From IMG/VR virus record IMGVR_UViG_3300043410_001892, positions 186,001 through 250,000 of that record: DNA of 64,000 nt; one strand, given 5' to 3'. Below, piece after piece: positions 181-28,284 of this stretch; the first letter of the stretch is position 1, and the number at the start of each line of letters is the position of its first letter. The notes below the pieces were generated by a model. That model did no database searches. It was given only the letters and a program-made list of their open reading frames with translations, and was not told the DNA's origin. The position numbers and the translations under genes were made by a program.

Positions 181-455
181 TTTAATTCCGTCCTTGCTAA
201 TTCTAAAAACATTTGATATTTTTCGTAGGCTTGTTTGACAGCTGGAACTTTTTCTCTAACAAACATATCTTCGTAATATGTTTTATTCCATTCTTCACAT
301 TTTTCAGCTTTCACTATTAACTCTTCAAAACTTCGTTGGTTTATCTTAACAGTTAGTAGTTGCTCATATCGATAATCATTGGCACTTATATAGTGTTGAT
401 CTAAACAAACTTCCCTAATTCCATATTTTCCAAATTTTTCAACTATATTAGACAT
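177..455 (-). CDS. hypothetical protein (probable start MSNIVEK at 455)
   Basis: TAATG stop/start overlap with the PRTase gene; C-terminal PAVKQAYEKY motif. Confidence 0.6.
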   Translation of the reverse strand: MSNIVEKFGKYGIREVCLDQHYISANDYRYEQLLTVKINQRSFEELIVKAEKCEEWNKTYYEDMFVREKVPAVKQAYEKYQMFLELARTELK

Positions 456-949
456 TATTTCTTCCAAAAGTCTTCCCAGGGAAACACAATCCAAGTATCT
501 TCTTCACGTTTGTCAATTTCTTCAACAGCAAAGTCAACTTCTACTGTACTACCTAAATTATTAAAGATTGTAGCAAACTTAACATTTTCATGCCAAACAT
601 TATCGGCCCATCTTGGATCAGTTGGTATACAATTTGATTGCCAATCTTGCATAATCCAGTTAAATGTTTCACCTGAATCGTTTATATCATCAACAATTAA
701 GATATTTTCAGATTCAAATGCATCGTTAGCTAACCAACAGTTAGATTCAGTATATACATGGTCACGTAAACTAACGTGTATTACGTACATCTTAATTCCT
801 AAGTATTGACTTAACATATTGGCGGGTGTAACCCCGCCTCTACTAATACCAATAATATATTCTGGAGTCCAACCGCTGGCATTAATTTGACGAGCAAGTT
901 CTAAAACTGCACCTTCAAGTTGTTGCCAAGAGTAATGTACTTTTTTCAT
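455..949 (-). CDS. type I phosphoribosyltransferase (xanthine/guanine PRT-like)
   Basis: IIGISRGG loop, PRPP-binding ILIVDDINDSGETF, C-terminal WIVFPWE as in Gpt-like enzymes. Confidence 0.85.
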   Translation of the reverse strand: MKKVHYSWQQLEGAVLELARQINASGWTPEYIIGISRGGVTPANMLSQYLGIKMYVIHVSLRDHVYTESNCWLANDAFESENILIVDDINDSGETFNWIMQDWQSNCIPTDPRWADNVWHENVKFATIFNNLGSTVEVDFAVEEIDKREEDTWIVFPWEDFWKK

Positions 950-1401
950 TCTGGTTCCTTTGGTAATAAGCTATCTGCATAGCAAACTGAGTAAACTAAT
1001 TTTAGATTTTCGTATGCTTTATCTAAACCTGGGTATTCTTCACATAGTTTTCTAAAAGCATTCCATTCTGGAAACTTATCTACAAAATCTGTTCCATAAC
1101 TTGGACTAACCGGACTCCAACCTCCGCCAGTTCCGGTATACACGTAATTTGAATTATTAGTAGTATTATAAAACATTGAACCAGTGTACGATCCACTAAA
1201 GGTAGAACCAGTGTAAGGACCATTAGTGTTGTTACTAATAGTAATAGTATCACCAGCACTCATTGACGATGATATACCATAACTACCAGTTACACTCATA
1301 CCAGTTAAATAAGATGACAACGTGTCTGTTGTAAATGCTGGAATAGAAGTTGTACTGTATAATGATTCTGGAAGTGTAATTGTATCAATTGAATTTGTCA
1401 T
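946..1401 (-). CDS. hypothetical protein with a Ser/Thr-rich N-terminus
   Basis: ORF track; likely start MTNSID; C-terminal YPGLDKAYENLK motif. Confidence 0.55.
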   Translation of the reverse strand: MTNSIDTITLPESLYSTTSIPAFTTDTLSSYLTGMSVTGSYGISSSMSAGDTITISNNTNGPYTGSTFSGSYTGSMFYNTTNNSNYVYTGTGGGWSPVSPSYGTDFVDKFPEWNAFRKLCEEYPGLDKAYENLKLVYSVCYADSLLPKEPE

Positions 1402-2485
1402 ATAATTTCTCTGCATTAAAAAATGCCTTGGTTAAATAATCAGCTTGTTGCTGAATATATGTTTTCATTGAATCGTAATTTTCAATATAATCGATAATTT
1501 TGTTACATAACTCAAAACTATGATCCTCATATGCTTTAAAGTCTTCTGTCCATTCTGATGGATATTTAAAATGGAACTTATACATTTCTTTATAGCTTAA
1601 TCTATCTGGTACCATAGGTATAGCATCAAGCATTACTCCTTCATAACAGCTAATACCAAGTGTTTCTTGTAAGTTTGCACTAAACACAATCTTTGCTTCG
1701 CTTAATAATGTATGATATTCATCTTTAGTTAGTTTTTCATCTTGGCAAACTACAAAATCGTATTGTGGCATTTGCTTTGCTATTGCTCTAAATATTTCAA
1801 CTTGTTTCTCTGGAGCAATACGATGTGGAAAAACAATCAAATCACGTTTTTCTTTATTTTTAAAAGGAGCTAATGTGTCTGTTAAGTATTCCATTGGCCA
1901 GCCAGTACGTACAATACTACCATCGTCATATACTTCATCCCAGTCTTCGTCGTACCATGGATTTTCACTAGGATATCCACTATTGATAACTTTGTCAAAG
2001 AACATTTTAACATGGAATTCTGTAGCAAAGTAATTATGAGTAAATGCAGTGTATAATGCTCGTTCGGTATGTTTAACCCAAGCATCTTTGATAGCACCTA
2101 AGAAGTCATGTTCATCGTAATTACCAGCATGCCATAGTCCATGAAATTGCCAATTAAACCCCATTAAGTCATTGATGTATTTTAATTGAAGTATTGAAGT
2201 ATTCCAAGCATCTGTAAATAAGAAATGATCGTCAGGTGTTGTTTTGCCTTCAAATTGCTTTAATAAGAATGTACATAATTGTGAACTTTTCCAGTAGTTA
2301 GTATCTACAAAGTTTAAGAATGCGCCTTGTGTGACTTCTGTTGATTGACGATAACCATCTATTTGGCAAATATTAAATTTATCATTAAGATTGTCTTGTA
2401 GTTGCTGAGGTATATGAGTATGCCATTGACCAGTATAACGTGTGTCTAAAGGTTCTACAGGAAATATCCATATTGTAGGTTTCAT
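1385..2485 (-). CDS. GT-B fold glycosyltransferase
   Basis: FPHRIAPEKQ, ANLQETLGISCYEG and PMVPDRLSYKEMY match the GT4-like donor-binding region; likely start MKPTIW at 2485. Confidence 0.8.
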   Translation of the reverse strand: MKPTIWIFPVEPLDTRYTGQWHTHIPQQLQDNLNDKFNICQIDGYRQSTEVTQGAFLNFVDTNYWKSSQLCTFLLKQFEGKTTPDDHFLFTDAWNTSILQLKYINDLMGFNWQFHGLWHAGNYDEHDFLGAIKDAWVKHTERALYTAFTHNYFATEFHVKMFFDKVINSGYPSENPWYDEDWDEVYDDGSIVRTGWPMEYLTDTLAPFKNKEKRDLIVFPHRIAPEKQVEIFRAIAKQMPQYDFVVCQDEKLTKDEYHTLLSEAKIVFSANLQETLGISCYEGVMLDAIPMVPDRLSYKEMYKFHFKYPSEWTEDFKAYEDHSFELCNKIIDYIENYDSMKTYIQQQADYLTKAFFNAEKLYDKFN

Positions 2486-2504
2486 AATGTATTCCAAGTA
2501 ATTG

Positions 2505-2529
2505 AAAGAAAGCCCCAATTGGAGCTTTC
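2505..2529 (-). terminator. possible intrinsic terminator
   Basis: GAAAGCTCC-AATT-GGGGCTTTC hairpin followed by a short T run. Confidence 0.45.
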
Positions 2530-2545
2530 AAGTTAAAGAGGTTGA

Positions 2546-2794
2546 TTAAGATTTTTTAAAGTTTTTTGGTCTAACGCCGTTAGGCCATGGTTTATTACCT
2601 TGATAAGGTTTACGTGGGCGTTTGCTTGCTAAATACGCACCGTATGATTTAGTGTCCTTGCGATATAAATCTGCTGGATCAAACTTACGCATTTCAATTC
2701 TACAAAAATCATGAAATGCTTCGAGATCTTCAAAGATCTTAACAACATCAGGACGTGATTCAAAGTATGAGAATGATTTGTAATTTTTAGCCAT
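2546..2794 (-). CDS. hypothetical basic protein
   Basis: ORF track, in operon order. Confidence 0.6.
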   Translation of the reverse strand: MAKNYKSFSYFESRPDVVKIFEDLEAFHDFCRIEMRKFDPADLYRKDTKSYGAYLASKRPRKPYQGNKPWPNGVRPKNFKKS

Positions 2795-2795
2795 T

Positions 2796-3005
2796 TTATT
2801 TTTTTCCGTTTCTTAATATAGTTGTATGGGTACGAAGTGAAAGTAATGTTTTTAATTCGTGCAATTCACATCTTAGTTTTGCTATTTTTGGATCGTTTTT
2901 TTTAGTATTATTGATGTAATAATATTTTTGTTCAAACAGTTTTATCTCTTGACGCTTTTGCTCAATCTTTTTTTGTAGCATTGTTTTAGATATATAATGT
3001 TTCAT
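2796..3005 (-). CDS. hypothetical protein
   Basis: ORF track; ATGA overlap with the upstream gene. Confidence 0.45.
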   Translation of the reverse strand: MKHYISKTMLQKKIEQKRQEIKLFEQKYYYINNTKKNDPKIAKLRCELHELKTLLSLRTHTTILRNGKK

Positions 3006-3364
3006 GAATATTTAATAAATGAACCATTTTCATTATCTTCAGATATTTCAATCCAAATCTCTCTATCTGAATATTTCTGTGAAATAGTTTGATGTAACTC
3101 ATTACTAATCATTTCACAGCTCTTATTATCTAGTGATAGTATAGCATCACTATACAATAAAGTCAACCAACGTTTAAATTGGATAAACTCAATATCTCTG
3201 TCAGCGTGTGTAACTTCAATCCAAACTTTAAAATGAAATATATGTCTATGTGGATATCCTAAGAACTCTACATCCTCTAATTTTGGATCAGTTAGAGCAG
3301 CAGGATAACAGTGTATTCCTTCTTTTGAAAATGTGACAAAAATAAATTTGCTAGTTGTTTCCAT
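3002..3364 (-). CDS. QueD-like T-fold protein, DpdL-like (putative 7-carboxy-7-deazaguanine decarboxylase)
   Basis: LGYPHRHIF fits the LxxxHRHxF signature I recall for DpdL; SCEMIS and EISEDNENG resemble the QueD C-terminal motifs; next to the TGT-like gene. Confidence 0.65.
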   Translation of the reverse strand: METTSKFIFVTFSKEGIHCYPAALTDPKLEDVEFLGYPHRHIFHFKVWIEVTHADRDIEFIQFKRWLTLLYSDAILSLDNKSCEMISNELHQTISQKYSDREIWIEISEDNENGSFIKYS

Positions 3365-4034
3365 GTTTTTTCTTATTTTGATGTGCTAAAAGTCTAGCCT
3401 CTGACCAAGGTTTGCCTTTCTCAGGGCCGGTTTTTTTTTGTGATTCTGCGGCTAAAATTCGTGCTTCAGACCACGGTTTACCTTTTAATGATTTACTTAT
3501 TTTTTCTTTATGAATATCAGTTAACATTACACCTGTTTTTGATTTACTAATTTTTAATTTAGTTTCATTACGATGTAACTTCCCCTCCATACCTGATTTA
3601 AGAGTTCCATTTTTAATTTTAGTTTCAATAATTTTCCGTTTAGTGTCAGCTGGCAATTTTTTACCTAAATGCGATTTTGATAAGTTTTTTCGATGCTCTT
3701 CACTCTTAACTCTATTCTTCCACGATGGCGGTTTGTTATCTAAACAAATGTTCGTTAATATGCCATTTTCTTCAAATCCAATTCTGCCGTATTTAAGAAT
3801 TTCTTCAGTTTCTAATTTGTAAGCGTCGTCTTCATTAATGATATTATCTATAACTTTTTTGATTATAGGAGGCATATTATGTTGAATTAAAAATTGTATG
3901 CGATAAAACTTATGACGATTTAACGTATTTTCTGCTGTTTCGGTTAAATGATCAAAACATCTGTTGGCTGTTCCTTTACCTATATAAAATGGTAAGTTAT
4001 CTCTAGGATCTATATAATGATAAATGTAATACAT
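3351..4034 (-). mobile_element. free-standing GIY-YIG homing endonuclease gene with NUMOD3-like repeats
   Basis: YIYHYIDPR...FYIGKG..R, conserved E and LTN; repeats SEEHRKNLSKSHLGKK, ETKLKISKSKTG, HKEKISKSLKGK; AGGAG RBS. Confidence 0.85.
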
Positions 4035-4051
4035 GGTATTCTCCTTGTAGT

Positions 4052-4090
4052 TTATTTATCAAACGTTACCCATATCATTTGCTGTTTCAT
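4052..4090 (-). pseudogene. 12-codon remnant (MKQQMIWVTFDK*) of the original 5' end of the DpdL-like gene
   Basis: MIWVTF aligns with FIFVTF at the N-terminus of 3002..3364; starts 2 nt after the upstream stop. Confidence 0.6.
4053..4060 (-). promoter_or_regulatory. T4-like late promoter motif upstream of the endonuclease
   Basis: GATAAATA about 20 nt upstream of the ATG. Confidence 0.5.
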
Positions 4091-4092
4091 AT

Positions 4093-4620
4093 TTAACTCT
4101 TTAATGTATCGTTGTTGTAAGCATCCCAACCTGTAAACATATTAGGATTTTGTAATGTCTGTAAACTATGTGTCCAAATACCTGGATTAGTTGCATTAAA
4201 TGTAACATCATCGAGTTTAATCATAGTATTAGTATTCCATTTGTGTATATTTGCAATTGGCATTCTAATTTGTGGAATAAACTTTTCATATGAGCATAGC
4301 TCAGTTTTTACATTAAAGTCATTTAATACAGTATATGGAATATCTAATGAACAAGTTTTACCTGTTTTTAAAAAATACTCAATAGTATGAGCCCAAGACA
4401 TCCATGATCCGGCATTTTGTGGATTAAAGCTATGGTTTGCACCAAAGAATATATGATCTACATCGTCTTCAAGATATATCTCAATTGCTTCTATGGTTTG
4501 AATACCTACTACAAACAGTGTTTTCATACCGTATGCAGGTGTATGTTCTACTTCATTGCCTGTAAAAAACTTTACAGGCGTTGTAATTTCGTTTTTATAT
4601 GGTCTTATCATTTTTAACAC
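4093..4620 (-). CDS. hypothetical protein in the deazaguanine cluster
   Basis: ORF overlaps the end of the TGT-like gene; FTGNEVEHTP and HIFFGANHSF motifs; function unknown. Confidence 0.65.
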   Translation of the reverse strand: MLKMIRPYKNEITTPVKFFTGNEVEHTPAYGMKTLFVVGIQTIEAIEIYLEDDVDHIFFGANHSFNPQNAGSWMSWAHTIEYFLKTGKTCSLDIPYTVLNDFNVKTELCSYEKFIPQIRMPIANIHKWNTNTMIKLDDVTFNATNPGIWTHSLQTLQNPNMFTGWDAYNNDTLKS

Positions 4621-6253
4621 TTTCTTCTAAGTTAGTTAATACTTCTATTTGTTTTTCGGTAAACTCTTCAGAATCAACATCATCTTCGTTATCACCGAAG
4701 TCAAAATATTTATTCAATATTGTTTGATGGTTATAAATTTTAAGTCCGGTATTTCCTCTAGTACCAGGAATTGTCATCCATAGTCTATCGTATTTTTCAA
4801 TTATATCTAAAGATTCTTGTTTGTTCTTAGTTGCAAATATTGAATCAATTAGATCACGTACAATAATTGTATCATGAACTTCTTTTATTAGCATATTTGG
4901 AAATACATTATTGTCGTATGCTTGATTTGCCTCTTGTACAGCATTCACATGGCTCCAAACATTGTGACCCATTAAAATTGCATAACTAAAACTATCCCAA
5001 CTTGTTCTACCAACTTTGTTAACTTTATTAACATCGCCAAGTGTAATCCAATACTTAGGATCATTTAAGTATTTAGGGTCTTTAAATAACGCTACATGGT
5101 CAATATTATCAGCATTGACTTCTGTCCAATTAGGAACACCTTGTTTATAAATGCAAATATCTTTAATTTCTACTTGATCAATAATTGGACTAGATTTAAA
5201 TACATTAAAGATTTTATCTTGAATAACTGCATCTTTAAATAATCTAGTATCCGTTGAATATTTTTTATCATCAACGCTTGGAACCATTCGATAAACCCAT
5301 TTAGATCTATCTGTTAGTTCAGTATTGATGTATACTTGTCCATTTGCTGTAGCTAAAAACGGACTAGCACAATCATAACTAATTGTAAAGTTAGGATTAT
5401 GATATTTTCGTACTGCTCGTTGAATATCAGTTAGCAAACAAGCCCATTCGAGCTTGCTTGTTCCTAAAAAGTGCATCCAGTCTTGTTTTCCTTGTTCTAA
5501 TAAACCGTCATGTATAATAGTAATAAGTCTTCTAAGAACTAAGGATAAATCGCACATATTCTGACCACCCATTGCCCATCCATTAAATGCTTTATCGCCA
5601 TAGATGTTAGGATCACAATATTTTTTCATACGATCATACCAATCATTTGCATCATCGTGTGTTTCGCCTTGCAGTACATTAAGGAATTTACATTTACCAG
5701 TTCTATTTTGGATAAAGTATTCATTATTGATATCTGTACCTGCTACTGCATCAGCATATGAGTTAACACCTGTTGCCTTACGCCCAGCCGGGCTACGTGC
5801 TACCCAAGCCGGAATATCAAGACACATGCCATAATCCATTAGCTCATCCATCCAACGCAATACTTGTTCACGTTTCTTTTGTGCTTTAGGACAATTAGGA
5901 TTTTTCCAATCAGCTGGCCAGACACCTTTACCAATTTGGAATCCTCCTGAGTCGCCTAATACAAAACTTGTAGTTCTATCTCTGTTACGAAACATGTCTT
6001 CACTATCGTCAAACTTGTCTAAATCTAAGTTTGCATGTCCAGCTGAATACAAGCACCATTTATAATAAAATTGCCCTTTCTCTGGTTCCAAGTAGTTAAG
6101 ACTTTCTACACCTGCAGAAAAAGATGCAGGAATTCTTGCTGGATCTACATACTGATTATATCTCTGTTTTCCAATAAACGTAGCATAAAAGCCCGACGTT
6201 GCTGGTAGAAACACAGCGTAATCATTCTGTGTTGCTGTTAGGTTCCTGTTCAT
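4595..6253 (-). CDS. tRNA-guanine transglycosylase-family protein, DpdA-like (7-deazaguanine insertion into DNA)
   Basis: TGT motifs in the expected order: LGDSGGFQ, MCLDIP, NVLQG, AMGG, MHFLG, SYDCASP, GHN; located next to the replication genes and the DpdL-like gene. Confidence 0.8.
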   Translation of the reverse strand: MNRNLTATQNDYAVFLPATSGFYATFIGKQRYNQYVDPARIPASFSAGVESLNYLEPEKGQFYYKWCLYSAGHANLDLDKFDDSEDMFRNRDRTTSFVLGDSGGFQIGKGVWPADWKNPNCPKAQKKREQVLRWMDELMDYGMCLDIPAWVARSPAGRKATGVNSYADAVAGTDINNEYFIQNRTGKCKFLNVLQGETHDDANDWYDRMKKYCDPNIYGDKAFNGWAMGGQNMCDLSLVLRRLITIIHDGLLEQGKQDWMHFLGTSKLEWACLLTDIQRAVRKYHNPNFTISYDCASPFLATANGQVYINTELTDRSKWVYRMVPSVDDKKYSTDTRLFKDAVIQDKIFNVFKSSPIIDQVEIKDICIYKQGVPNWTEVNADNIDHVALFKDPKYLNDPKYWITLGDVNKVNKVGRTSWDSFSYAILMGHNVWSHVNAVQEANQAYDNNVFPNMLIKEVHDTIIVRDLIDSIFATKNKQESLDIIEKYDRLWMTIPGTRGNTGLKIYNHQTILNKYFDFGDNEDDVDSEEFTEKQIEVLTNLEESVKNDKTI

Positions 6254-6632
6254 CTTTTTCCTGTGTTAGTTTTTTAATTTCGTTTTCTAAAACTGTGATT
6301 TTGTTTTGTAATTCTTTTACAAGATAATGCTCTGTAACATTATTAGTACTTCTAGCATCAATTTGATTATTTAACCAAGTATTATAGATGTAATTTGTCG
6401 CCGGATTGCGCTGAAATTGTTCTAAGGTATAGATTTTTGACCTTACTTCATCTATTTGCCATTTTATATTTTGAAAGTCGTTATAAAAACTCTCAAATGG
6501 TCCAAATGCGCCAGTTGTTTGATCTAAACTGGCTAATACTGCTATTTTATTGTATGATTCTCTAATAGAATCATTATCAGAAGTATAAATTACATCTAAT
6601 AGTTTTAATGCTTTTCTAAAATCAGTAATCAT
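6222..6632 (-). CDS. hypothetical coiled-coil protein
   Basis: ORF track. Confidence 0.55.
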   Translation of the reverse strand: MITDFRKALKLLDVIYTSDNDSIRESYNKIAVLASLDQTTGAFGPFESFYNDFQNIKWQIDEVRSKIYTLEQFQRNPATNYIYNTWLNNQIDARSTNNVTEHYLVKELQNKITVLENEIKKLTQEKDEQEPNSNTE

Positions 6633-7369
6633 TTTGTTTGTGCAGGTAATGTATAAGTGTAAACTGAAACGCCACTTTCAACTACAATTTGAAGCATTCC
6701 CATATCTGATATTTTCATAGTAATATTGCCATCAAGATTTAAAATACTTAATACTTGAGGAATTGACCATGCAAACGTATTTTTTAATCCAACTGGAACA
6801 TTTGGTTGAAATACTAAAGAACCTGCATGTGAGTTTGCATCACCAAACTTAAATATAAGGTTGTTATTTTCTGTTGTTACTTGAAAGAACGTTTCTTCAG
6901 TATGTGCAGCAGCTTGAAACTTTAATTTTGTTATACTTGCTGACGACGGAGTAAATTCAATGTCATATGATATCTGTACTTTATTTTTTGGTGTTTTTAC
7001 TTTTTCTTCAATAATAGATCGATTCATAAATCGATAATGATTTTGAAAATCGCCTGATGCATTATTAAAGTGTAACCCAGTTGGAGTAGGTTCACCATCT
7101 CTTGCTTCTAATGTCAATGTAATAACTGCATCTTTTTTGTATTCTGGACATTTAAGATGTAGATCTAGTTTGTTTAAGTTTGGAAAACCAAATACAAACC
7201 CTTCATGTAGTCCGTATACTAGACCGTTTGTTTTACCACTCATAAGTACTGATCTATCTTCAGACTGTGATTCGACTTCAATATAGTCTGCATGGGTTGT
7301 AATTTTAGCTAAAGGTAAAAAACCTAATGAATTTGTATGTGCTACAACGTCTTGTAAAAATGATTTCAT
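6629..7369 (-). CDS. putative DNA polymerase sliding clamp (gp45-like)
   Basis: 246 aa alpha/beta protein directly downstream of polB, with a clamp-like size and C-terminus; a clamp loader is present in the window. Confidence 0.55.
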   Translation of the reverse strand: MKSFLQDVVAHTNSLGFLPLAKITTHADYIEVESQSEDRSVLMSGKTNGLVYGLHEGFVFGFPNLNKLDLHLKCPEYKKDAVITLTLEARDGEPTPTGLHFNNASGDFQNHYRFMNRSIIEEKVKTPKNKVQISYDIEFTPSSASITKLKFQAAAHTEETFFQVTTENNNLIFKFGDANSHAGSLVFQPNVPVGLKNTFAWSIPQVLSILNLDGNITMKISDMGMLQIVVESGVSVYTYTLPAQTK

Positions 7370-7424: not shown

Positions 7425-10085
7425 TTAATCAAAGTCAAAAAATAAGTTAGATAAGTTTGTTTCAGAAGTTTCAATTAGTTTCCAGTTTAGTATACCAATT
7501 AAGTTGTCTAATTTATTATCAATGATAGTTTTTTCCATTTCTCTATGATCAAATGGTAGATCTTTAAACCATTGTGGTAATCTTAGTTCATCTACCGGGT
7601 ATGCAACACTTACATAACCTAATGGATTGGGTTTAAGTTTACATACAATTACTTTTGCACCATCAGTAATGCTCATAGAATACTTGTCACCGTTCATACG
7701 TTTTAAAGAATTCCAGTTTGCACTTGCTCTAACATGCCCAGGCATATTAACTTTACCAATTTTTGCCTCTTTTTCAGTATATGAAGTAATGCTGTTAGCT
7801 CGTTTAGGTGATCCTTTTTCCCATCCTGGTCTTGATTTAAATAAGGTTCTAAACTCACTAATAAAGTTTAGCACAGATTGTTCTGATTCACCGTCTAGCA
7901 CCTTAGTTAGTATATCAGATAAGAAGTCTTGGATAAATTCTGGAGTATCACTACGCTTTAAATCTAAACCCATAGCTTTAATTTCACCAGTTTTACCATG
8001 TGTATCCTTACGTTTACCTTCTTTGTCGTATACTAATACTGCATATCGCTTTTTAGTAATAAACAATGATTTACTTCCTACGATCTCACGACCAGCTTTA
8101 ATTACTTCACCGCGTGTTTTAGGACAATGAAATGCATCTAACATAAATTGTTGGAATGTATTATTCACTTGATCACTGATTTGATCATACAACTGTACAA
8201 TAGTTTCTTTAGTCCATGGAATAGTTCCAGCATCAATATCTTTTTTCAATGTATTATATGCTGAAAAGTAACAAGAGTCAGTATCACCATATATAATAGC
8301 TTTGCCTAAATGATTATATTCACCTGTAATAATTTCATTTACCTTTGCAGCCATATGTTTAGCTACTTGTCTACCAGTTAGTGTAGTAGATTGACCAATA
8401 CGCTTATCAAAGAATCTACAACCTGGATTAAGAATTGCACCGTATAAACTATTTAGGTTAATCTTCTTAACTAGTTGTCGTTTATCCCAGTATTCTTCTT
8501 CAATTTTATTACCAGAAGCAATGGCTTCTTTCAGTTTCTTCTGCATATCTTTACGTTCTGAATACCAACGTTTAAGTAGACCTGAAATAACACCTTCTTT
8601 TTCGTATGTAAATATAGTTCCATTGGCTGACATGACCCATGGTTGATTACTTTCAAACACTAGTCTATATACTTCTGCAGCACTCAATACATTACTATCG
8701 CCGTTTTCCCAGTCAACTACGATATCAGTACCTATTTCTTCATTCATTACTGAAGTATATTCAAGTGTACCAAATAATCCTTCCCATGCAGCAGCAAATG
8801 ATTTACCTTTAGCTATTTGTAAGCTAATATATTCGTCAGTTGCTATTGGTCTTAATTGTCCTACAATAGTTTCCGGACCCATATTTAATGCTCTAATAAC
8901 ACTAGGATATAGTGAATTGATATCAAGTGATCCAACCCAATCGTGAATACCTTCTTTTGGATATGCAACATACGCACCGGCAGCTTGAACTGCATCTTCT
9001 CTGCGTCTATTTGGAACAACAAAACCTCTATTATGTGCTTCGTTGATAATAGCTTGCTCTGTTACTGCAACTGCGCCCATGGTTGTTTGTAATAATACAG
9101 TATTTTCATGTGCAACAGTATTAGCCAAATCGATAAACTTTAGTTTTTTATCAAGACGATCTAATAGCATAGTATCTTGTCTGTTATATTCAATGAATGT
9201 TTTAAAATCATTGTTGTATAACTGATCAAGTGTACCTTCGTATTGTGTTTTTCTATCACCTAACTCGTATTCTGCAATAGCATCGAGTCTAAAACTATGT
9301 CGTTCTTCATATGTGTACTTTTGATATAGTTGTAAACTATCTAAATGGATACGTCCAATAAGATCATATGTTACTGCAGTTTTGCCATAGCGTTCATATT
9401 CACGTCTTTTTGGAAATTGATCAAATAAACAGAATCTGCGGGTATCATCTTTTGATAATACTTTAGTAACACGATTTACTGTATATGGAATATCAAACCC
9501 TTCGCTATTCCAACCACTTAAAATGTCAGCATCATCGATTAGTGTAAGAAACGTATCTAATAATTCTGCTTCAGTTTTAAATAAAAAAGTATTTGGGAAC
9601 TCTTTTACTTGTTCAGTGGCTTCCTCCATGGTTAATGTCTTAGGAGGAATAGCTAAACAGATAAGAGTTTCCAACCATTGTAAGTGTACAGCAATTGAAG
9701 TGATTGGCATAAATGCATCATCAGGTGTTGCATAGCCACGTTCTGGGTCAAAATCAACCTCGATATCAAAAAACGCAACATTTAACTTAGGTGCGTCATG
9801 ATTGAGGTAATTTTCAGATAAATGTGTGAAAATTGGATTGATATCAGCTTCAAACGTTTTTGAATTTGCGTGTATAGAAAGTTCTTTTCTATACTCTTTT
9901 GTATTTTTACAGACAATACGTGATACTGGATCACCGTAAATTGATTGATATCTACCTTTTGGGTCTTTATAATATAATGTGTGTTTAACAGGTGAATCTT
10001 TAAACTCTCTTTCACCTTTTTCATTTCTTTCTACAATTTTAATGACATCGTTACTTCTATCAAAGTATGCATCTACATAACTCAT
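7425..10085 (-). CDS. family B DNA polymerase with a 3'-5' exonuclease domain (gp43-like)
   Basis: Exo FDIEV, GWNSEGFDIPY, YNRQD; polymerase DINSLYPS, KINLNSLYG, YGDTDS, KKRY. Confidence 0.97.
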   Translation of the reverse strand: MSYVDAYFDRSNDVIKIVERNEKGEREFKDSPVKHTLYYKDPKGRYQSIYGDPVSRIVCKNTKEYRKELSIHANSKTFEADINPIFTHLSENYLNHDAPKLNVAFFDIEVDFDPERGYATPDDAFMPITSIAVHLQWLETLICLAIPPKTLTMEEATEQVKEFPNTFLFKTEAELLDTFLTLIDDADILSGWNSEGFDIPYTVNRVTKVLSKDDTRRFCLFDQFPKRREYERYGKTAVTYDLIGRIHLDSLQLYQKYTYEERHSFRLDAIAEYELGDRKTQYEGTLDQLYNNDFKTFIEYNRQDTMLLDRLDKKLKFIDLANTVAHENTVLLQTTMGAVAVTEQAIINEAHNRGFVVPNRRREDAVQAAGAYVAYPKEGIHDWVGSLDINSLYPSVIRALNMGPETIVGQLRPIATDEYISLQIAKGKSFAAAWEGLFGTLEYTSVMNEEIGTDIVVDWENGDSNVLSAAEVYRLVFESNQPWVMSANGTIFTYEKEGVISGLLKRWYSERKDMQKKLKEAIASGNKIEEEYWDKRQLVKKINLNSLYGAILNPGCRFFDKRIGQSTTLTGRQVAKHMAAKVNEIITGEYNHLGKAIIYGDTDSCYFSAYNTLKKDIDAGTIPWTKETIVQLYDQISDQVNNTFQQFMLDAFHCPKTRGEVIKAGREIVGSKSLFITKKRYAVLVYDKEGKRKDTHGKTGEIKAMGLDLKRSDTPEFIQDFLSDILTKVLDGESEQSVLNFISEFRTLFKSRPGWEKGSPKRANSITSYTEKEAKIGKVNMPGHVRASANWNSLKRMNGDKYSMSITDGAKVIVCKLKPNPLGYVSVAYPVDELRLPQWFKDLPFDHREMEKTIIDNKLDNLIGILNWKLIETSETNLSNLFFDFD

Positions 10086-19298: not shown

Positions 19299-19904
19299 CT
19301 AATTAAGAATCCTATCGATTGATAACTTAATATTGCCTAAATGTAATTTAACAAATAAAAGAGTGTGTTCTCCTTTAACATATAATTGTGAGCCAGCATC
19401 ATATCTATTTGGTTTTACAGATAACAACCGTTCAGTTTTTGGTTGAAGTTTAATTTTGTCATTGTTGTTAGACCATTCTATAAACTCAGGATTAAGATTA
19501 GCTACTCCACCGAGCGTAACTCTAAAATCATATGGAGTATTTGGCATGTATACCATTCCTCGTTCTAATCCATCTGGTGGAATACCAATTGAATCAACAA
19601 ACCTTGGTATTAAATCTCGAATAGCAGTAATATCATTGTAATTGTTAGTATAGATAATTAACGTTGGTAAATTAACTCTTGTTGCAAAGTTTTCCATATT
19701 CATTATATGTTCATATAGAAGAGTAGTTGCGTTATAATGATCTGGATAACGAATACTATCTATTTTAGAAACCATCTTAAGTCGTTTAGCATATTTAGAC
19801 TTGTCATGTCCTTTAAAGATATCGCCATTGGCGAGAGTCAATACGATATTGTATTGAAACTCGCCTTTGTACAATTTCTTAACAGTGGTAAACTTAATTG
19901 TCAT
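19299..19904 (-). CDS. hypothetical protein
   Basis: ORF track; ATGA overlap with clpA. Confidence 0.55.
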   Translation of the reverse strand: MTIKFTTVKKLYKGEFQYNIVLTLANGDIFKGHDKSKYAKRLKMVSKIDSIRYPDHYNATTLLYEHIMNMENFATRVNLPTLIIYTNNYNDITAIRDLIPRFVDSIGIPPDGLERGMVYMPNTPYDFRVTLGGVANLNPEFIEWSNNNDKIKLQPKTERLLSVKPNRYDAGSQLYVKGEHTLLFVKLHLGNIKLSIDRILN

Positions 19905-22180
19905 ACTGCTTGATTAACTGCCCGTACATGATCAAGTGTTAGTACTGGCCCTTTAGTAATTACTTTAGGTTTTGCTGTTAATGAAATCTTGTCATCAACA
20001 ACACTAATTGTTAACCAACCGCCGTTTTTAAGATCACCAAACAACATCATTTTAGCAAGATCGCGCTTGATCTCTTTATCAATTACACGATGTAGCGGTC
20101 TAGCACCCATCTTAGGATCAAAGCCTTTTTCTAACAACCAATTAGTTGCAGTTTTGTCAACTTTAATACGTACACCTTTGTCTTTAACTTGTTCACGAAC
20201 TTCATCCATAAACTTGTTAATAACTTTAACCATTGAATCTTTACCTAATTTGCTAAAGGTAATAATACCGTCAAGTCTGTTACGGAACTCAGGAGTTAAA
20301 AACTTCTTAAGTTCTGCATCTGAATAGTCTTTTTCTTGAGTACCAAAGCCAATTTGATTCTTTTCTGCAGCTTGAGCACCAGCATTAGTGGTTAGAATTA
20401 GTACAATATGTCGACAATCTGCTTGTCTGCCGTTTGAACCTGTAATAAAACCATTGTCCATCATTTGCAATAGTACAGTTGATACATCCGGATGTGACTT
20501 TTCAATCTCATCAAACAGCAATACTGCGTTAGGATTTTCTTGAATTTGTGTGATCAATAACCCTGCACTGTCTTCAAAGCCAACATAACCCGGAGGACTA
20601 CCAATTAATTTACTAATACTATGCTTTTCTTGATACTCAGACATATCAAAACGTAACAATTTAGTACTCAAGTGTTTAGCAAGTGCCTTAGCAGTTTCAG
20701 TTTTACCGCAACCTGTAGGCCCCATAAACACAAAACTACCAATTGGTTTATTTTCAGGTTTTAAACCTGCTTGTGCAACCATGATCTTATCAACAATTTC
20801 AGTAATTGCAGTGTCTTGGCCAAATACTTCTGTTTCAAGGGATTCTTGTAATGTGGCAATAGCACCGGTTTCAGTTTGCATAATTTGTTCAATAGGCATA
20901 TTGATCATTTTTGCTAATTCAAACTGAATTTCAGGCTCAGATACGATTCTGTGTTCAGCAAGTTTTAAGTTAAATCGCGAACATGCACAGTCAATTAAGT
21001 CAATAGCTTTGTCAGGTAGCTTTTTATCCGCTTGATATTTAACAGATAATTTAATTGCAGCCTGTAATGCATCGTCTTTGATTTTAAGTTTATGATGTCC
21101 TTCGTAGTATTTCTTAATACCTTTAAGAATCTGCAAAGTCATTTCTTGTGTAGGTTCATCAACAGTAATACGTTGGAATCTACGCATCAATGCACGATCT
21201 TTCTCAAAATGCTTACGATATTCATCCCATGTAGTTGACGCAATAACTTTGATGTTACCTTTACTAAGTGCAGGTTTCATCATATTAGCCAAGTCATTAG
21301 ATGAATTACCTGAAGCACCTGCACCACTAATCATGTGTGCTTCGTCGATAAACAATACGCATTTGCCTAATTTTTGTAGTGCTTTGATTACTTGTTTAAA
21401 GCGTTCTTCAAAGTCGCCTCTGTACTTAGATCCTGCTAACATTGCAGCAATATCAAGATTGTACACTGTATAATCTAATAAGAAATCTGGCACTGCTTCG
21501 TTGACAATATTATAAGCAAGCCCTTCAGCAATTGCAGTTTTACCTACACCTGGATCACCTACCATAATAATATTATTTTTACTACGACGACCTAATGCTA
21601 GTGCAATATGCTCTAACTCGTCTTCTCTACCAATAACAGGATCAATCTTTTTATTCTTAACTTCTTCATTTAAGTTAGTAGTATAAGATTGCAACGCCTT
21701 GTTAGTTGATTGATTTTTATTATCACCTACGTCATCGCCCATGTCAGTTGAATTCTGCATGTATTCGTTGAACTTTTCTTTAGTGATATTTACTTGTGAT
21801 ATATAGTAAAATGCCCATGTGCGCTTTTCACCTAACATTGCTAAGAAAAAGTTAGATGGTTCTATTTTTTGCCCACCATTAAACAATACCTGTGTAAATG
21901 ATCTATTCAACACACGTTCAACTGCTTGTGTTTTTTTAGGTTTAACAACAACGTCAACTGTAGTAATTTCTTGACATTTAGTTTGTAAATGATTAAGTAA
22001 TAAATTTTTCAAATAGTTTACGTCTGCCCCAACTCCTTGTAAAGCATTAGTAAATGAACTATCTTCCATAAGCATCGAGCATAGAACATGTTCTAATGTT
22101 ACATACTCATGGTGCATATTTTTTGCAGAGATAATAGCTTTGTCAAAAATCTCTTGTAATTTTTCGCTTGGTTCAACCAT
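19901..22180 (-). CDS. clpA: ATP-dependent Clp protease ATP-binding subunit ClpA
   Basis: N-domain HEYVTLEH; two AAA+ modules (GDPGVGKT/FIDEAH and GPTGCGKT/LFDEIEK); IGF ClpP-docking loop; no ClpB M-domain. Confidence 0.92.
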   Translation of the reverse strand: MVEPSEKLQEIFDKAIISAKNMHHEYVTLEHVLCSMLMEDSSFTNALQGVGADVNYLKNLLLNHLQTKCQEITTVDVVVKPKKTQAVERVLNRSFTQVLFNGGQKIEPSNFFLAMLGEKRTWAFYYISQVNITKEKFNEYMQNSTDMGDDVGDNKNQSTNKALQSYTTNLNEEVKNKKIDPVIGREDELEHIALALGRRSKNNIIMVGDPGVGKTAIAEGLAYNIVNEAVPDFLLDYTVYNLDIAAMLAGSKYRGDFEERFKQVIKALQKLGKCVLFIDEAHMISGAGASGNSSNDLANMMKPALSKGNIKVIASTTWDEYRKHFEKDRALMRRFQRITVDEPTQEMTLQILKGIKKYYEGHHKLKIKDDALQAAIKLSVKYQADKKLPDKAIDLIDCACSRFNLKLAEHRIVSEPEIQFELAKMINMPIEQIMQTETGAIATLQESLETEVFGQDTAITEIVDKIMVAQAGLKPENKPIGSFVFMGPTGCGKTETAKALAKHLSTKLLRFDMSEYQEKHSISKLIGSPPGYVGFEDSAGLLITQIQENPNAVLLFDEIEKSHPDVSTVLLQMMDNGFITGSNGRQADCRHIVLILTTNAGAQAAEKNQIGFGTQEKDYSDAELKKFLTPEFRNRLDGIITFSKLGKDSMVKVINKFMDEVREQVKDKGVRIKVDKTATNWLLEKGFDPKMGARPLHRVIDKEIKRDLAKMMLFGDLKNGGWLTISVVDDKISLTAKPKVITKGPVLTLDHVRAVNQAV

Positions 22181-22214
22181 TATTAGATCCTTGTGTAGTA
22201 GTTAATAAAGCAAT

Positions 22215-22243
22215 ATTATAAAGTATTTTAATTATAAAGTCAA
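22215..22243 (-). promoter_or_regulatory. sigma70-type promoter for clpA
   Basis: TTGACT-N17-TATAAT. Confidence 0.7.
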
Positions 22244-23091
22244 ATAATTTGACTGTTTATTTGTTGCAATTGTGCCACCAATTCTGGTTTGGTAACTGCA
22301 GGGGTTTTTATTTTTACAACAGTAACAAATCTTCCAATCTGTCTATTGTGTAAATTAGTAAACCCGCCGTGCGCTTTTGCATATTCTGTACCAGGTTGTA
22401 CTCCTGGTTTAATAGTAATGTTATGTTTTTCACCTATTAAGTTGGTAACTTCTTTAACACAACCAATCATTGCTTCAATTGGTGAAATTTCAATTGAAGT
22501 AAATATGTCATTACCTTCGCGTCTAAAATTAGGATCAGGTATTACATTTATAGTTACATTTAAATTACCACGTGGAACACCCGGCTGTGAGTTATCTCCT
22601 AAGCCGTCATATCTAATAGTATCTCCGTTATCAATACCTGCAGGTACGTTAATTACAACATGCTGTGGTTCTCCGCTAGGCAAGTTAATATTAGCATCTA
22701 TTTGTTTTCCTTTAAATGTATCTGCTAATGTGACTTGAATTTGTAAATTTAAATCTCGGTTACGGCGACCTTGTTGGAATCCATGTGCAAAGTGTTGTCC
22801 AAAAATATCATGCATATTAAACTGGAAGCCTCCACCGAAACTGTTACTAAATGGTCCTCCTCCACCAAATCCACCAAATCCACCAAATGGATTTCCATTT
22901 TGTTGCATATCATATTCTTGGCGTTTTTGTGGATCACTTAATGTATCATATGCTACTGAAATATCTTTAAATGTAGCTTGGTCTCCACCTTTGTCGGGAT
23001 GATGTTTATTTGCTAATGAACGATATGCTTTTTTAATATCGTCTTGTGATGCATCTTTTGATACACCTAATTTTGAATAAAAGTCTGTCAT
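22240..23091 (-). CDS. dnaJ: DnaJ-family chaperone (class B/CbpA-like, no zinc finger)
   Basis: J-domain with HPD, G/F-rich linker, DnaJ C-terminal domain. Confidence 0.9.
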   Translation of the reverse strand: MTDFYSKLGVSKDASQDDIKKAYRSLANKHHPDKGGDQATFKDISVAYDTLSDPQKRQEYDMQQNGNPFGGFGGFGGGGPFSNSFGGGFQFNMHDIFGQHFAHGFQQGRRNRDLNLQIQVTLADTFKGKQIDANINLPSGEPQHVVINVPAGIDNGDTIRYDGLGDNSQPGVPRGNLNVTINVIPDPNFRREGNDIFTSIEISPIEAMIGCVKEVTNLIGEKHNITIKPGVQPGTEYAKAHGGFTNLHNRQIGRFVTVVKIKTPAVTKPELVAQLQQINSQII

Positions 23092-27311: not shown

Positions 27312-28043
27312 ATGGGACACAAACGAGTACAAAAACGTTTTACATCACACGTCAACATAGTAGAATTTCAACAACCAAAACAAATTAAACCTAAACGCTA
27401 CAGTGTATCTTTAAATCCTCGCAACCAAAGTCAAAAAGAGTATGTTGCGATGTTACAAGATGAATCTACTAGTATTGTTTTTGCAATTGGTCCGGCTGGA
27501 ACAGGGAAAACGATGTTAGCTGTGCAACAAGGTATTAAATTGTTTCAAGAGGGAGTTATAGATAAAATTATTGTGACGAGACCGGCAGTGTCGGTAGATG
27601 AAGAATTGGGATTCTTACCAGGAACTTTAAATGAAAAGATGGCTCCTTGGACAAGACCTATTTTTGATGTATTCGGAGAGTATTACCATCAGACAGATAT
27701 TGCAAAGTTTTTGGCTGAAGGTGAGATTGAGATTAGCCCACTAAGCTATATGAGAGGTAGGACATTTAAGAATGCTTATATCATTTTTGATGAGGCGCAG
27801 AATACAACGCCAAATCAAATGAAAATGGCTCTTACCCGCTTAGGAGAAAATTCGAGAATGGTTGTAACAGGGGATTTAGCACAAGCTGATCGCTTGCATG
27901 ACAATGGATTATTAGAATTTATTGATAGATTAGACAATAATAAGACAGCGTTAAGCCATATTGATGTTGCGTATTTTACGCATAAAGATATTGAACGTCA
28001 TAGTGCAGTTAAGGAGGTATTAGCACTCTACGGGGAAAGTTAG
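27312..28043 (+). CDS. phoH: PhoH-family ATPase
   Basis: GPAGTGKT, TRPAV, LGFLPG, YMRGRTF, DEAQN, LTRLGE, GDLAQAD. Confidence 0.95.
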   Translation: MGHKRVQKRFTSHVNIVEFQQPKQIKPKRYSVSLNPRNQSQKEYVAMLQDESTSIVFAIGPAGTGKTMLAVQQGIKLFQEGVIDKIIVTRPAVSVDEELGFLPGTLNEKMAPWTRPIFDVFGEYYHQTDIAKFLAEGEIEISPLSYMRGRTFKNAYIIFDEAQNTTPNQMKMALTRLGENSRMVVTGDLAQADRLHDNGLLEFIDRLDNNKTALSHIDVAYFTHKDIERHSAVKEVLALYGES

Positions 28044-28060
28044 AAGTTTAAAAATAGAAC

Positions 28061-28084
28061 TAGCAGCTGACTAATCAGCTGCTA
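28061..28084. terminator. hairpin between convergent genes
   Basis: TAGCAGCTGA-CTAA-TCAGCTGCTA perfect 10-bp stem. Confidence 0.65.
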
Positions 28085-28284
28085 TGTTTTAGCATAAAAA
28101 GAAAAAACTTTTGTTCATCAAATACCTTGTAACTTTCAATTTTACGATTGTTAAAATCAAAGTACACTTCGACACCATAGGTTTCTTTAAGCCAATTCCA
28201 AAAGATGTTTGGAAATCCTAGCTCTTTCCATTCTATAGTTGCTTTATTATGAGCATCCTGTAATATATCAAGATCAATTGTCAT
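28075..28284 (-). CDS. small hypothetical protein
   Basis: ORF track; C-terminal FxxFxLK motif. Confidence 0.55.
   Translation of the reverse strand: MTIDLDILQDAHNKATIEWKELGFPNIFWNWLKETYGVEVYFDFNNRKIESYKVFDEQKFFLFMLKHSS

Follow-up and report, generated by a model that had tools for sequence, protein, structure and literature searches.

A predicted 7-deazaguanine DNA-modification cluster with a linked glycosyltransferase in a freshwater jumbo phage

The genes encoded next to the DNA polymerase of a freshwater jumbo phage raise the question of whether they serve to replace guanine in the phage DNA with a 7-deazaguanine derivative, and whether the glycosyltransferase (GT) among them takes part in making the final base. 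We analysed a window of 64,000 nucleotides (positions 186,001–250,000 of IMG/VR record IMGVR_UViG_3300043410_001892, parent contig of 372 kb). A preliminary description, made from the sequence alone, had pointed to a co-oriented run of genes directly downstream of the clamp and polymerase, containing a TGT-fold protein, a 175-aa unknown, a T-fold protein with LxxxHRHxF, a GT-B glycosyltransferase and a purine PRTase, with queD at 36011, and had proposed a new DNA hypermodification, for example a glycosylated deazaguanine. The observation was confirmed: all the named genes are present, and the genes of the run are co-oriented on the minus strand, often with overlapping stop and start codons. 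The features are as follows.

7425–10085, minus strand: family-B DNA polymerase (PolB).
6629–7369, minus strand: clamp-like protein.
6222–6632, minus strand: 136-aa ORF.
4595–6253, minus strand: divergent TGT-fold protein, DpdA-like, of the PA5oct gp316 family, 552 aa; LGDSGGFQ at residues 99–106 and ISYDCASPF at residues 291–299.
4093–4611, minus strand: U175, a conserved unknown enzyme-like protein; the ORF reaches 4620 from a GTG, but the real start is probably the ATG at 4611, giving 172 aa, as in its homologs and in the JGI gene call.
3351–4034, minus strand: GIY-YIG/NUMOD3 homing endonuclease (PF07460, PF22945, phrog_314).
3002–3364, minus strand: DpdL-type T-fold protein (QueD paralog), 120 aa, with LGYPHRHIF.
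2796–3005, minus strand: U69, a small basic protein (pI 10.1).
2546–2794, minus strand: U82, a small basic protein (pI 9.8), immediately upstream of the GT.
1385–2485, minus strand: GT4-type (GT-B, retaining-type signature) glycosyltransferase; the ORF reaches 2518, but the real start is probably the ATG at 2485, giving 366 aa.
946–1416, minus strand: U156, an unknown acidic protein with a Ser/Thr/Gly-rich N-terminal half and no family hit.
455–949, minus strand: type I purine phosphoribosyltransferase (PRTase), closest to xanthine-guanine PRTase (Gpt).
36011–36553, plus strand: canonical QueD (6-carboxytetrahydropterin synthase) with CxxxHGH.

The homing endonuclease, which had not been mentioned in the preliminary description, is a mobile insert between U175 and DpdL and is probably not part of the pathway. 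PolB (PF03104 and PF00136 on the JGI gene call) is 49% identical to that of Phosso and 45% to that of Atu_ph07; clamp homologs were found in PA5oct, Vibrio phage 2.275.O and Phosso, the last annotated as a sliding clamp.

The arrangement is not a chance pattern of ORFs. The order PolB-clamp-TGT-U175-DpdL-U82-GT-(U156)-(PRT)-FolE-QueE recurs in essentially all of 80 related IMG/VR loci wherever the contig reaches far enough, and the families have thousands of metagenomic homologs. U82 is present in 74 of the 80 loci, always between DpdL and the GT, the PRTase in 44, U156 in 16 and U69 in only 1, so that U69 is not conserved elsewhere.

We next asked whether the precursor pathway is complete. 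QueD is supported by PF01242 (E 1.7e-28) and TIGR03367 (E 7e-19), with the motif CKHLHGH seen in the alignment. The preliminary description had named a search for folE, queE and queC in the rest of the genome as a check, and FolE (NF006824, E 2e-91) and QueE (several QueE equivalog models at E 1e-9 to 7e-14, all below their cut-offs) were found immediately to the left of window position 1 in the parent contig. No QueC, QueF or Gat was found by tblastn in the window plus about 5 kb of flanks, the whole 372-kb genome not being searched for QueC. The set FolE, QueD, QueE and DpdL without QueC is exactly that tied to plain 2'-deoxy-7-deazaguanosine (dDG) (PMC10516641).

The TGT-like protein gave no Pfam, PHROG, NCBIfam or PDB sequence hit and fails every sequence model of TGT and DpdA. 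Its AF2 model (pLDDT 90.9), however, has a TGT fold: the top 50 Foldseek PDB hits are all TGT (E 4e-6), and VIA gives Z 17–18 over about 300 aligned residues. Its profile matches the DpdA of phages ACP17, X1 and BCSR5 (hhalign 98%, E 2.4e-13, from DSGGFQ through ISYD), which makes it a remote homolog of these proteins; against phiST DpdA3 the value is 83% over 88 columns. Residues D101, S102, G104, D146, G225, H261 and D294 are invariant across 56 sequences of 26–81% identity; the correspondence of the three aspartates to Asp102, Asp156 and Asp280 of Z. mobilis TGT rests on motif resemblance and not on a structural alignment. Homologs are PA5oct gp316 (37%), Vibrio phage 2.275.O (35%) and Phosso (28%).

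Since the closest solved structures are all tRNA-guanine transglycosylases, and the GT4 enzymes structurally similar to the window GT include tRNA-queuosine mannosyltransferase clusters, the enzyme might instead modify tRNA in a queuosine-like way, and the cluster would then reprogram translation during infection, with the GT making a glycosylated queuosine-like nucleoside in tRNA. We consider this very unlikely, as the profile is homologous to phage DpdA, PA5oct DNA itself is reported to resist G-dependent restriction (PMC12191111), no tRNA genes occur in the window, and the trio also occurs in bacterial islands beside a nuclease and an integrase, which is an R-M-like context.

The 120-aa T-fold protein is a bona fide DpdL homolog with an exact match to the LxxxHRHxF motif defined in PMC10516641 (phrog_17812, E 9e-33). 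In tblastn it is 59% identical to the protein of Phosso, 56% to RHph_I1_18, 55% to ACP17, 49% to PA5oct and 31% to phiST, and it was also aligned with named DpdL proteins and with QueD; hhalign of DpdL against QueD gives 68% over the C-terminal 39 residues.

U175 has 3480 homologs, none of the 120 examined having a Pfam domain, and many invariant polar residues (E23, E25, H56, N62, H63, S64, C90, D93, Q117, R119, K135, D137, D138, H151). One homolog lies directly upstream of DpdA in ACP17 (30%), and another is PA5oct gp364 (42%), encoded elsewhere in that genome. The AF2 model (pLDDT 81.6) is an alpha/beta fold without a significant Foldseek hit; a weak resemblance to QueE by two methods (VIA Z 6.5, Atlas TM 0.52) was not confirmed by hhalign.

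The GT has an Atlas model (pTM 0.87) with TM 0.72–0.79 to GT4 clusters. R233, K238 and E285 are invariant and E293 is near-invariant, the two glutamates forming an intact EX7E motif, and 7 of 15 family members hit PF00534 (best 8e-12). The donor-binding residues are likewise intact. Homologs lie beside DpdL in Phosso (46%), PA5oct (43%), ACP17 (33%), X1 (25%; X1/BUDD) and BCSR5 (22%). Co-occurrence of the GT and the 175-aa protein with dpdA across phages had been proposed beforehand as a test, and it came out positive: besides these phages, the GT lies beside DpdL in 22 of 27 informative DpdL loci in GTDB genomes, in four gene orders, and U175 recurs in ACP17 and PA5oct. A distant GT paralog in Xanthomonas phage PhiXhv-15 sits in a different, GlmS-linked context.

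Synteny extends across unrelated phages: PA5oct has TGT-GT-DpdL-..-PRT-QueE, ACP17 has QueD-FolE-U175-DpdA-GT-DpdL-QueE, Phosso has DpdL-GT-..-FolE-..-QueE, and X1 and BCSR5 also carry the module. In the Pseudomonas jumbo phage PA5oct (Wroclawvirus, 287 kb, a different host and genome), gp316–gp322 lie directly downstream of PolB and the clamp and include DpdL (49%), the PRTase (gp321, 32%), QueE and an extra short SDR-like gene (gp320, PF01370). All these genes are annotated as hypothetical; the DNA is reported as G-modified from restriction patterns (PMC12191111), but the base has not been identified, and there is no chemical evidence for any member.

These data bear on an alternative, namely that the system makes plain dDG, as in Cellulophaga phage phiST and vibriophage VP1, which shows full dDG replacement. 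The GT would then not decorate the DNA base, but could make a transient glycosylated intermediate, act on another target such as a protein or an envelope component, or serve as a scaffold. The gene set fits this reading, dDG has no side-chain nucleophile for a sugar, and plain 7-deazaguanine offers no obvious acceptor apart from N2. The GT is acidic (pI 5.0), unlike the T4 DNA glucosyltransferases, which fits a small-molecule acceptor better than DNA. Five of the 27 informative DpdL loci, and phiST, do without the GT, so DpdL systems can work without it. On the other hand, tight GT-DpdL adjacency is preserved through four gene orders and in very distant lineages, including chromosomal islands, which is hard to explain unless the GT works in the same pathway; its catalytic signature is intact; and ACP17 DpdA plus DpdL alone, without the GT, gave no dDG in E. 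coli, the authors suggesting that other enzymes may be needed (PMC10516641). We therefore regard this alternative as possible but rather unlikely.

The PRTase (PF00156, E 3.6e-15; phrog_8995; NCBIfam xanthine PRTase, E 1.8e-16, 60 bits against a cut-off of 138) could point to a pre-replicative route at the nucleotide level, as in tubercidin and toyocamycin biosynthesis, in which it would couple CDG or 7-deazaguanine to PRPP, the nucleotide would be processed to a dNTP and incorporated by the phage polymerase, and the TGT-like protein would play a minor or different role. The PRTase does lie inside the cluster here, in PA5oct and in related loci, the tubercidin pathway also uses CDG, a PRTase and a decarboxylase and lacks QueC, and the module sits in the replication gene block next to PolB. 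However, no PRTase was found in the ACP17, X1, BCSR5 or Phosso stretches examined, nor in most of the chromosomal-island loci of isolate genomes, so it is dispensable; it resembles Gpt most closely, a TGT-fold enzyme with conserved aspartates is present in nearly every locus, and no dGTP-removing MazG-like enzyme was found in the window. This route is thus improbable. Tubercidin biosynthesis also differs in using a UbiD-family decarboxylase and GMP-reductase-like tailoring, in having no TGT, and in yielding a free nucleoside.

Comparison with the closest known systems shows what is already described and what is not. The dDG system of phiST (Cui, Hutinet et al., NAR 2023, PMC10516641) likewise has the CDG pathway without QueC, a DpdL with LxxxHRHxF and a TGT-superfamily enzyme encoded next to the polymerase genes, with restriction evasion at G as the expected outcome, but its DpdA3 is short (259 aa) and only remotely similar, it has no GT homolog, U175 or PRTase, it does have a MazG-like gene, and its product is known to be plain dDG. 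In the bacterial Dpd system and phage DpdA1/DpdA2 (dPreQ0, dADG, dG+), a TGT-superfamily enzyme also inserts a queuosine-pathway base into DNA, but these systems use preQ0 and therefore need QueC, their DpdA proteins match Pfam DpdA/TGT models, and they have no DpdL or GT. Glucosylation of 5-hydroxymethylcytosine in T4 (alpha- and beta-glucosyltransferases, GT-B fold) is the only well-established logic in which a phage GT-B enzyme adds a sugar to an already modified DNA base to block restriction; the acceptor there is a hydroxymethyl pyrimidine, there is no detectable sequence relationship, and the window GT carries the GT4 EX7E signature. GT4-type enzymes acting on 7-deazaguanine-derived acceptors are HuiG of huimycin (UDP-GlcNAc) and tRNA queuosine mannosyltransferase (QTMAN/GTDC1). 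QTMAN clusters are among the structural neighbours of the window GT (TM 0.72–0.75), although the similarity is no greater than to other GT4 families (TM 0.74–0.79), the QTMAN_N Pfam domain is not detected, and the acceptors are a free secondary-metabolite base and a tRNA nucleoside, not DNA. We found no paper describing a glycosylated deazaguanine base in DNA.

Taken together, our results indicate that the region is most likely (probability about 0.6) the core of a 7-deazaguanine DNA-modification system of the DpdL branch, which has no QueC, in a freshwater jumbo myophage related to the Rak2, Atu_ph07 and PA5oct group. The proposal of a new hypermodification is thus partly supported and stands as a well-founded hypothesis, not as a finding: the gene content, the predicted TGT fold, the DpdL and GT4 assignments and the GT-DpdL linkage come directly from the analysis, whereas action of the TGT-like enzyme on DNA is inferred from context and from the PA5oct restriction data, decarboxylation of CDG by DpdL has never been shown for any member (PMC10516641), and it was not shown that the sugar ends up on the deazaguanine, or in DNA at all. 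The functional link of the system to the GT is well supported; a glycosylated base is plausible, at roughly even odds, but unproven.

In the model that we propose, FolE, QueE and QueD convert GTP to 7-carboxy-7-deazaguanine (CDG), as follows from their family assignments. The DpdL-type protein, possibly together with U175, would convert CDG into the base to be inserted, for which published work proposes decarboxylation to 7-deazaguanine. The TGT-fold enzyme would exchange guanine in phage DNA for that base, as inferred from fold, conserved aspartates, homology to phage DpdA and context. The GT, nearly always encoded within a few hundred bases of DpdL, would transfer a sugar from a host NDP-sugar either to the free base before insertion or to the base once in DNA; this is inferred, and the analysis did not identify the sugar, the attachment site or the timing. 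The Gpt-like PRTase, also by inference, would be an accessory enzyme that most simply recycles the released guanine into GMP and then GTP, the pathway's own precursor. The expected result would be phage DNA that resists G-dependent restriction and carries a base other than plain dDG, which may be a still-undescribed sugar-bearing one.

The window is part of a 372,173-bp viral contig from a JGI freshwater metagenome, with about 33% G+C. Its family-B DNA polymerase is closest to those of the jumbo myophages Phosso (49%) and Atu_ph07 (45%) and of Rak2- and 121Q-like coliphages. A near-identity DNA search of the phage collection returned no match, and no tRNA gene was found in the window. From position 10085 down to position 455, the minus strand carries the following genes in this order, with one further gene of interest on its own:

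PolB and a clamp-like gene
A 136-aa ORF
A 552-aa protein containing DSGGFQ and ISYD (TGT-like)
A 175-aa unknown protein (U175)
3351–4034, minus strand, a GIY-YIG/NUMOD3 homing endonuclease, by its PHROG and Pfam hits, inserted between U175 and DpdL and overlapping the DpdL start by 14 bases
A 120-aa protein containing LGYPHRHIF (DpdL)
A small basic ORF (U69)
2546–2794, minus strand, an 82-aa basic protein (U82, pI 9.8) immediately upstream of the glycosyltransferase
A glycosyltransferase-like protein (GT)
A 156-aa unknown protein (U156)
A PF00156 phosphoribosyltransferase (PRTase)
36011–36553, plus strand and apart from this run, QueD

The gene run noted in the preliminary description is therefore confirmed. 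It had also been suggested beforehand that folE, queE and queC be sought outside the window; in the parent contig, FolE (NF006824, E 2e-91) and a QueE-like radical-SAM protein lie just beyond window position 1, while tblastn with QueC, QueF and Gat-QueC from a vibriophage found nothing in the window or those flanks, the rest of the 372-kb genome not being examined. DpdL thus occurs together with FolE, QueD, QueE and a DpdA-like protein, and without a detected QueC.

The TGT-like protein matches no Pfam, PHROG, NCBIfam or PDB sequence. None of 56 family members hits the curated models PF01702 (TGT) or PF23859 (DpdA) at E 0.01, and their profile finds no TGT in the PDB; only the feature search of the Atlas lists TGT and DpdA clusters, at scores of 0.93 and 0.88. 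The family is nevertheless very large, with more than 7,400 matching proteins clustered at 90% identity and 931 clusters at 50% identity, and at least 120 of them carry no Pfam domain. Structure comparison had been named in advance as a check. An AlphaFold2 model from a diverse alignment is confident (pLDDT 90.9, pTM 0.90), all of its top 50 Foldseek PDB matches are tRNA-guanine transglycosylases (best E 4e-6), and VIA-align gives Z 17–18 over about 300 residues to archaeal, bacterial and eukaryotic TGTs.

Across the 56 sequences, of 26–81% identity, the invariant residues are D101, S102 and G104 (in DSGGFQ), D146, G225, H261 and D294 (in ISYD). By motif resemblance, and not by a structural alignment, the aspartates correspond to the catalytic and base-binding D102, D156 and D280 of Z. 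mobilis TGT. Profile–profile comparison links the family to the DpdA proteins of ACP17, X1 and BCSR5 (hhalign 98%, E 2.4e-13, spanning DSGGFQ to ISYD); in this alignment, D101 and D146 pair with the invariant DSGG and FDEIP aspartates, and the ISYD motif pairs with ISYDS. The link to phiST DpdA3 is weaker (83%, E 1e-5). The DpdA subfamily to which the authors of PMC10516641 assign ACP17 was not compared. On this basis, we call the protein a divergent DpdA-like member of the TGT superfamily that current sequence models do not detect. Base exchange on DNA rather than tRNA was not assayed, and only context bears on it: the replication module, the linked CDG genes and the restriction data for PA5oct (PMC12191111).

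The same TGT-like family is also paired with a preQ1-type pathway and no GT. In Vibrio phage 2.275.O._10N.286.54.E11 (retrieved locus L003, 6905–13931), a 596-aa homolog lies downstream of PolB and the clamp and is followed by a 370-aa protein with a weak Amidoligase_2 hit, then QueF, a YhhQ-like transporter, QueC, a Gat-like amidotransferase and FolE.

The 120-aa protein is 55% identical (E 1e-42) to the ACP17 protein and 31% identical, over 93% of the query, to the phiST protein named DpdL by Cui, Hutinet and colleagues (PMC10516641). It carries their diagnostic LxxxHRHxF motif as LGYPHRHIF, where phiST has LSLNHRHLF and ACP17 has LGSPHRHLF, while the QueD of the window keeps CxxxHGH (CKHLHGH). 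The evidence for a T-fold, QueD-like profile is less clear: the window protein has no PF01242 hit, and hhalign against QueD gives only a moderate 68% (E 5e-5) over 39 columns, which leaves the matter undecided here; the 99.9% HHpred match is published for phiST DpdL and was not repeated. The proposed decarboxylation of CDG has never been demonstrated for any member, heterologous tests having failed (PMC10516641), and we did not measure it.

For the GT, the ESM Atlas holds a confident model (pTM 0.87), with no further model computed by us. Its neighbours are GT4-type GT-B families (TM 0.74–0.79 to Glycos_transf_1 and Glyco_transf_4 clusters), which supports a predicted fold of two Rossmann domains. 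In an alignment of 15 sequences reaching down to 23% identity, R233, K238 and E285 are invariant and E293 is nearly so, together giving the EX7E signature and the conserved Arg/Lys of the donor site. The window protein itself has no significant Pfam hit, whereas 7 of the 15 family members match PF00534 (best 8e-12) and 2 match PF13692, so that membership at the Pfam level is neither secured nor excluded. The enzyme looks catalytically competent and is acidic (pI 5.0). We considered a specific kinship with tRNA-queuosine mannosyltransferase, but the TM-scores to those clusters (0.72–0.75) are no better than for other GT4 families and QTMAN_N is not detected, and this was rejected as a specific claim. 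We also considered a glucosyltransferase for hydroxymethyl-pyrimidines; Pfam scans of ORFs between 10.7 and 37 kb found no hydroxymethylase or thymidylate-synthase-like gene, only a dCMP deaminase.

U175 has 3,480 homologs and a dense set of invariant Glu, His, Asp, Asn, Cys, Arg and Lys residues, as expected of an enzyme. Homologs occur in ACP17, immediately upstream of its DpdA, and in PA5oct (gp364). Its model (pLDDT 81.6) has no significant Foldseek match. Two independent shape searches rank QueE first among named families (VIA Z 6.5, Atlas TM 0.52), but these values are within the noise range stated for the methods, hhalign against phage QueE is negative (0.9%), and there is no CxxxCxxC or equivalent 4Fe-4S motif, the protein having only two Cys, one of them invariant. 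A possible QueE-derived, cluster-less, CDG-binding fold is recorded as a lead only. U175 is not related to the Phosso 'glycosylase', PA5oct gp320 or phiST CGPG_00066. Against the 143/155-aa proteins upstream of the GT in X1 and BCSR5, only a weak N-terminal similarity was seen (hhalign 28%), which speaks neither for nor against a relationship. Single-sequence and profile searches of the TGT-like protein, of the ACP17-type DpdA alignment and of U175 against PDB sequences gave nothing meaningful, and single-sequence searches of DpdL and the GT found nothing either.

The PRTase contains a type I domain (PF00156, E 3.6e-15, above its cut-off) and, in its translation, ILIVDDINDSGET, the PRPP loop. 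It does not reach the equivalog level for Gpt: NF006613 scores 60 bits against a cut-off of 138, and only the N-terminal 100 residues align. The combination of CDG, a PRTase and a decarboxylase is known from tubercidin biosynthesis (bioRxiv 10.64898/2026.04.15.718813), and a nucleotide-level, tubercidin-like route through this enzyme was one of the alternatives that we considered. However, the PRTase is present in only about half of the related loci and was not found in the stretches examined for the other lineages.

Whether the GT belongs to the pathway was the key point that the preliminary description had proposed to examine through co-occurrence across phages, and the outcome is positive. 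In PA5oct, the order is PolB, clamp, TGT-like (37%), GT (43%), DpdL (49%), two small genes, PRTase (32%) and QueE. A truncated NAD-dependent epimerase/dehydratase-like protein (gp320, PF01370, 172 aa; PA5oct locus L001, 10419–10937) lies there between DpdL and the PRTase; it might hint at sugar-nucleotide or redox chemistry and has no counterpart in the window. In ACP17, the order is QueD, FolE, U175, DpdA, GT, DpdL and QueE. In X1 and BCSR5, the GT is directly upstream of DpdA, with DpdL and QueE nearby. In Phosso, the clamp and one intervening gene are followed by DpdL, GT and, further on, FolE and then QueE, with other genes between. All 80 IMG/VR loci retrieved with the GT (51–100% identity) keep the order PolB-clamp-TGT-U175-DpdL-U82-GT-(U156)-(PRT)-FolE-QueE as far as each contig extends. 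U82 is present in 74 of these 80 loci; it has no family match and could be a DNA-binding or partner subunit of the GT.

A search for DpdL in one genome per GTDB species returned 42 loci. Of the 27 with at least 3 kb on both sides, 22 carry the GT family, usually within 300 bases, and 20 carry the TGT-like or ACP17-type DpdA. These GTDB loci show four different gene orders: TGT-DpdL-GT, GT-DpdL-TGT, DpdA-DpdL-GT and GT-TGT-DpdL. Some of them lie in large contigs of isolate genomes; the trio of GT, DpdL and TGT-like protein occurs with QueD in chromosomes of isolated Magnetospirillum, and alone in Methylobacterium and Aurantimonas (locus L118 and, similarly, loci L111, L112, L114, L116, L117, L119, L120 and L128). 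In Magnetospirillum aberrantis SpK (locus L118, 7176–13675, from a 424-kb contig), the trio plus QueD sits next to a CoiA-like nuclease, a HEPN_LA2681 protein, a two-component pair and a phage-type integrase. This looks like a chromosomal island, which may be a Dpd-like restriction-modification island using the same chemistry, and it fits DNA rather than tRNA as the target, tRNA being another of the alternatives that we considered.

Conversely, phiST and several T4-like DpdL phages have no detectable GT, and phiST DNA is known to contain plain dDG in place of all G. These cases bear on the alternative that the product is plain dDG and that the GT does something else. A distant paralog of the GT (27% identity over 58% of the query) in Xanthomonas phage PhiXhv-15 (locus L013, 6606–9840), a 229-kb phage, sits next to a GlmS-like aminotransferase and a PIG-L/BshB-like deacetylase, with no DpdL, and could belong to a different amino-sugar pathway. 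In PA5oct, the modified base was not identified (PMC12191111). GT4 enzymes acting on deazaguanine-type acceptors are known from huimycin (HuiG; bioRxiv 10.64898/2026.04.15.718813), but literature searches for a glycosylated deazaguanine in phage DNA found nothing. Base-call signatures of modification could not be followed, since all carriers are represented by assembled contigs (freshwater, aquatic and mat metagenomes) without a read-level signal.

Elsewhere in the window, two giant ORFs of 4041 aa (37339–49464, plus strand) and 1788 aa (51530–56896, plus strand) are present, which we did not analyse. The phage encodes a chaperone set (19901–23091 and 30832–31215, minus strand) consisting of a ClpB-like double AAA+ protein (759 aa), a DnaJ homolog with J and C-terminal domains, and a GroES-like Cpn10. 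A 169-aa protein (31599–32108, minus strand) matches only the NTPase-domain part of the DNA polymerase III alpha subunit (PF07733); Phosso annotates a similar 'DnaE-like' fragment two genes upstream of its TGT-like gene (Phosso locus L002, 5083–5658). PhoH, on the plus strand and opposite to its neighbours, lies together with a dCMP/cytidine deaminase and an SPFH/Band-7 protein at 27312–29563.

Taken together, these data suggest the following mechanism. GTP would be converted to CDG by FolE, QueD and QueE, as follows from family assignments. DpdL, perhaps with U175, would convert CDG into the base to be inserted, a step proposed in the literature but not proven. The remaining steps are inferred by us: the DpdA-like enzyme would exchange G in phage DNA for that base, and the GT4 enzyme would add a sugar from a host NDP-sugar, either to the free base or to DNA. 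The latter inference rests on linkage and an intact active site, and the sugar, its site and the order of steps were not identified. The Gpt-like PRTase probably salvages the released guanine back toward GTP, which is likewise inferred. We estimate a probability of about 0.85 that this is a deazaguanine DNA-modification system, and we are as confident that the GT works in the same pathway; that the mature DNA base carries a sugar is possible, at even odds or slightly less. The interpretation in the preliminary description, a candidate new hypermodification with a glycosylated deazaguanine as an example, is thus supported in part. The system belongs to a known kind, with a realistic chance of hiding a new kind of DNA base.

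Our analysis explains two loose ends in the literature, namely the unidentified G modification of PA5oct and the failure of ACP17 DpdA plus DpdL to make dDG in E. coli; that experiment omitted the GT and U175 genes, which lie beside and between those two genes. Cultured phages carry the module, including PA5oct and Paride, which are phage-therapy candidates, as well as ACP17, X1 and BCSR5, so that the question is directly open to experiment. The work also defines a large TGT-fold family that no current sequence model recognises, which means that deazaguanine-modified phage genomes are being under-counted in metagenomes.

A bolder possibility, tentative and somewhat less likely than not, is that phages of this very large clade, together with PA5oct-like, ACP17-like and X1-like phages and some bacterial genomic islands, replace guanine with a glycosylated 7-deazaguanine derivative, made by a four-part core of a long DpdA-like transglycosylase, DpdL, a GT4 glycosyltransferase and, in many cases, the U175 enzyme. 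This would be a sugar-bearing purine in DNA, which the literature that we could search does not describe. In phages, the known DNA sugar decorations all sit on pyrimidines, on hmC and on hmU derivatives. A glycosylated deazapurine would be a new class of natural DNA base, and it would also bring a new DNA- or base-directed glycosyltransferase and a new target for modification-dependent defences.
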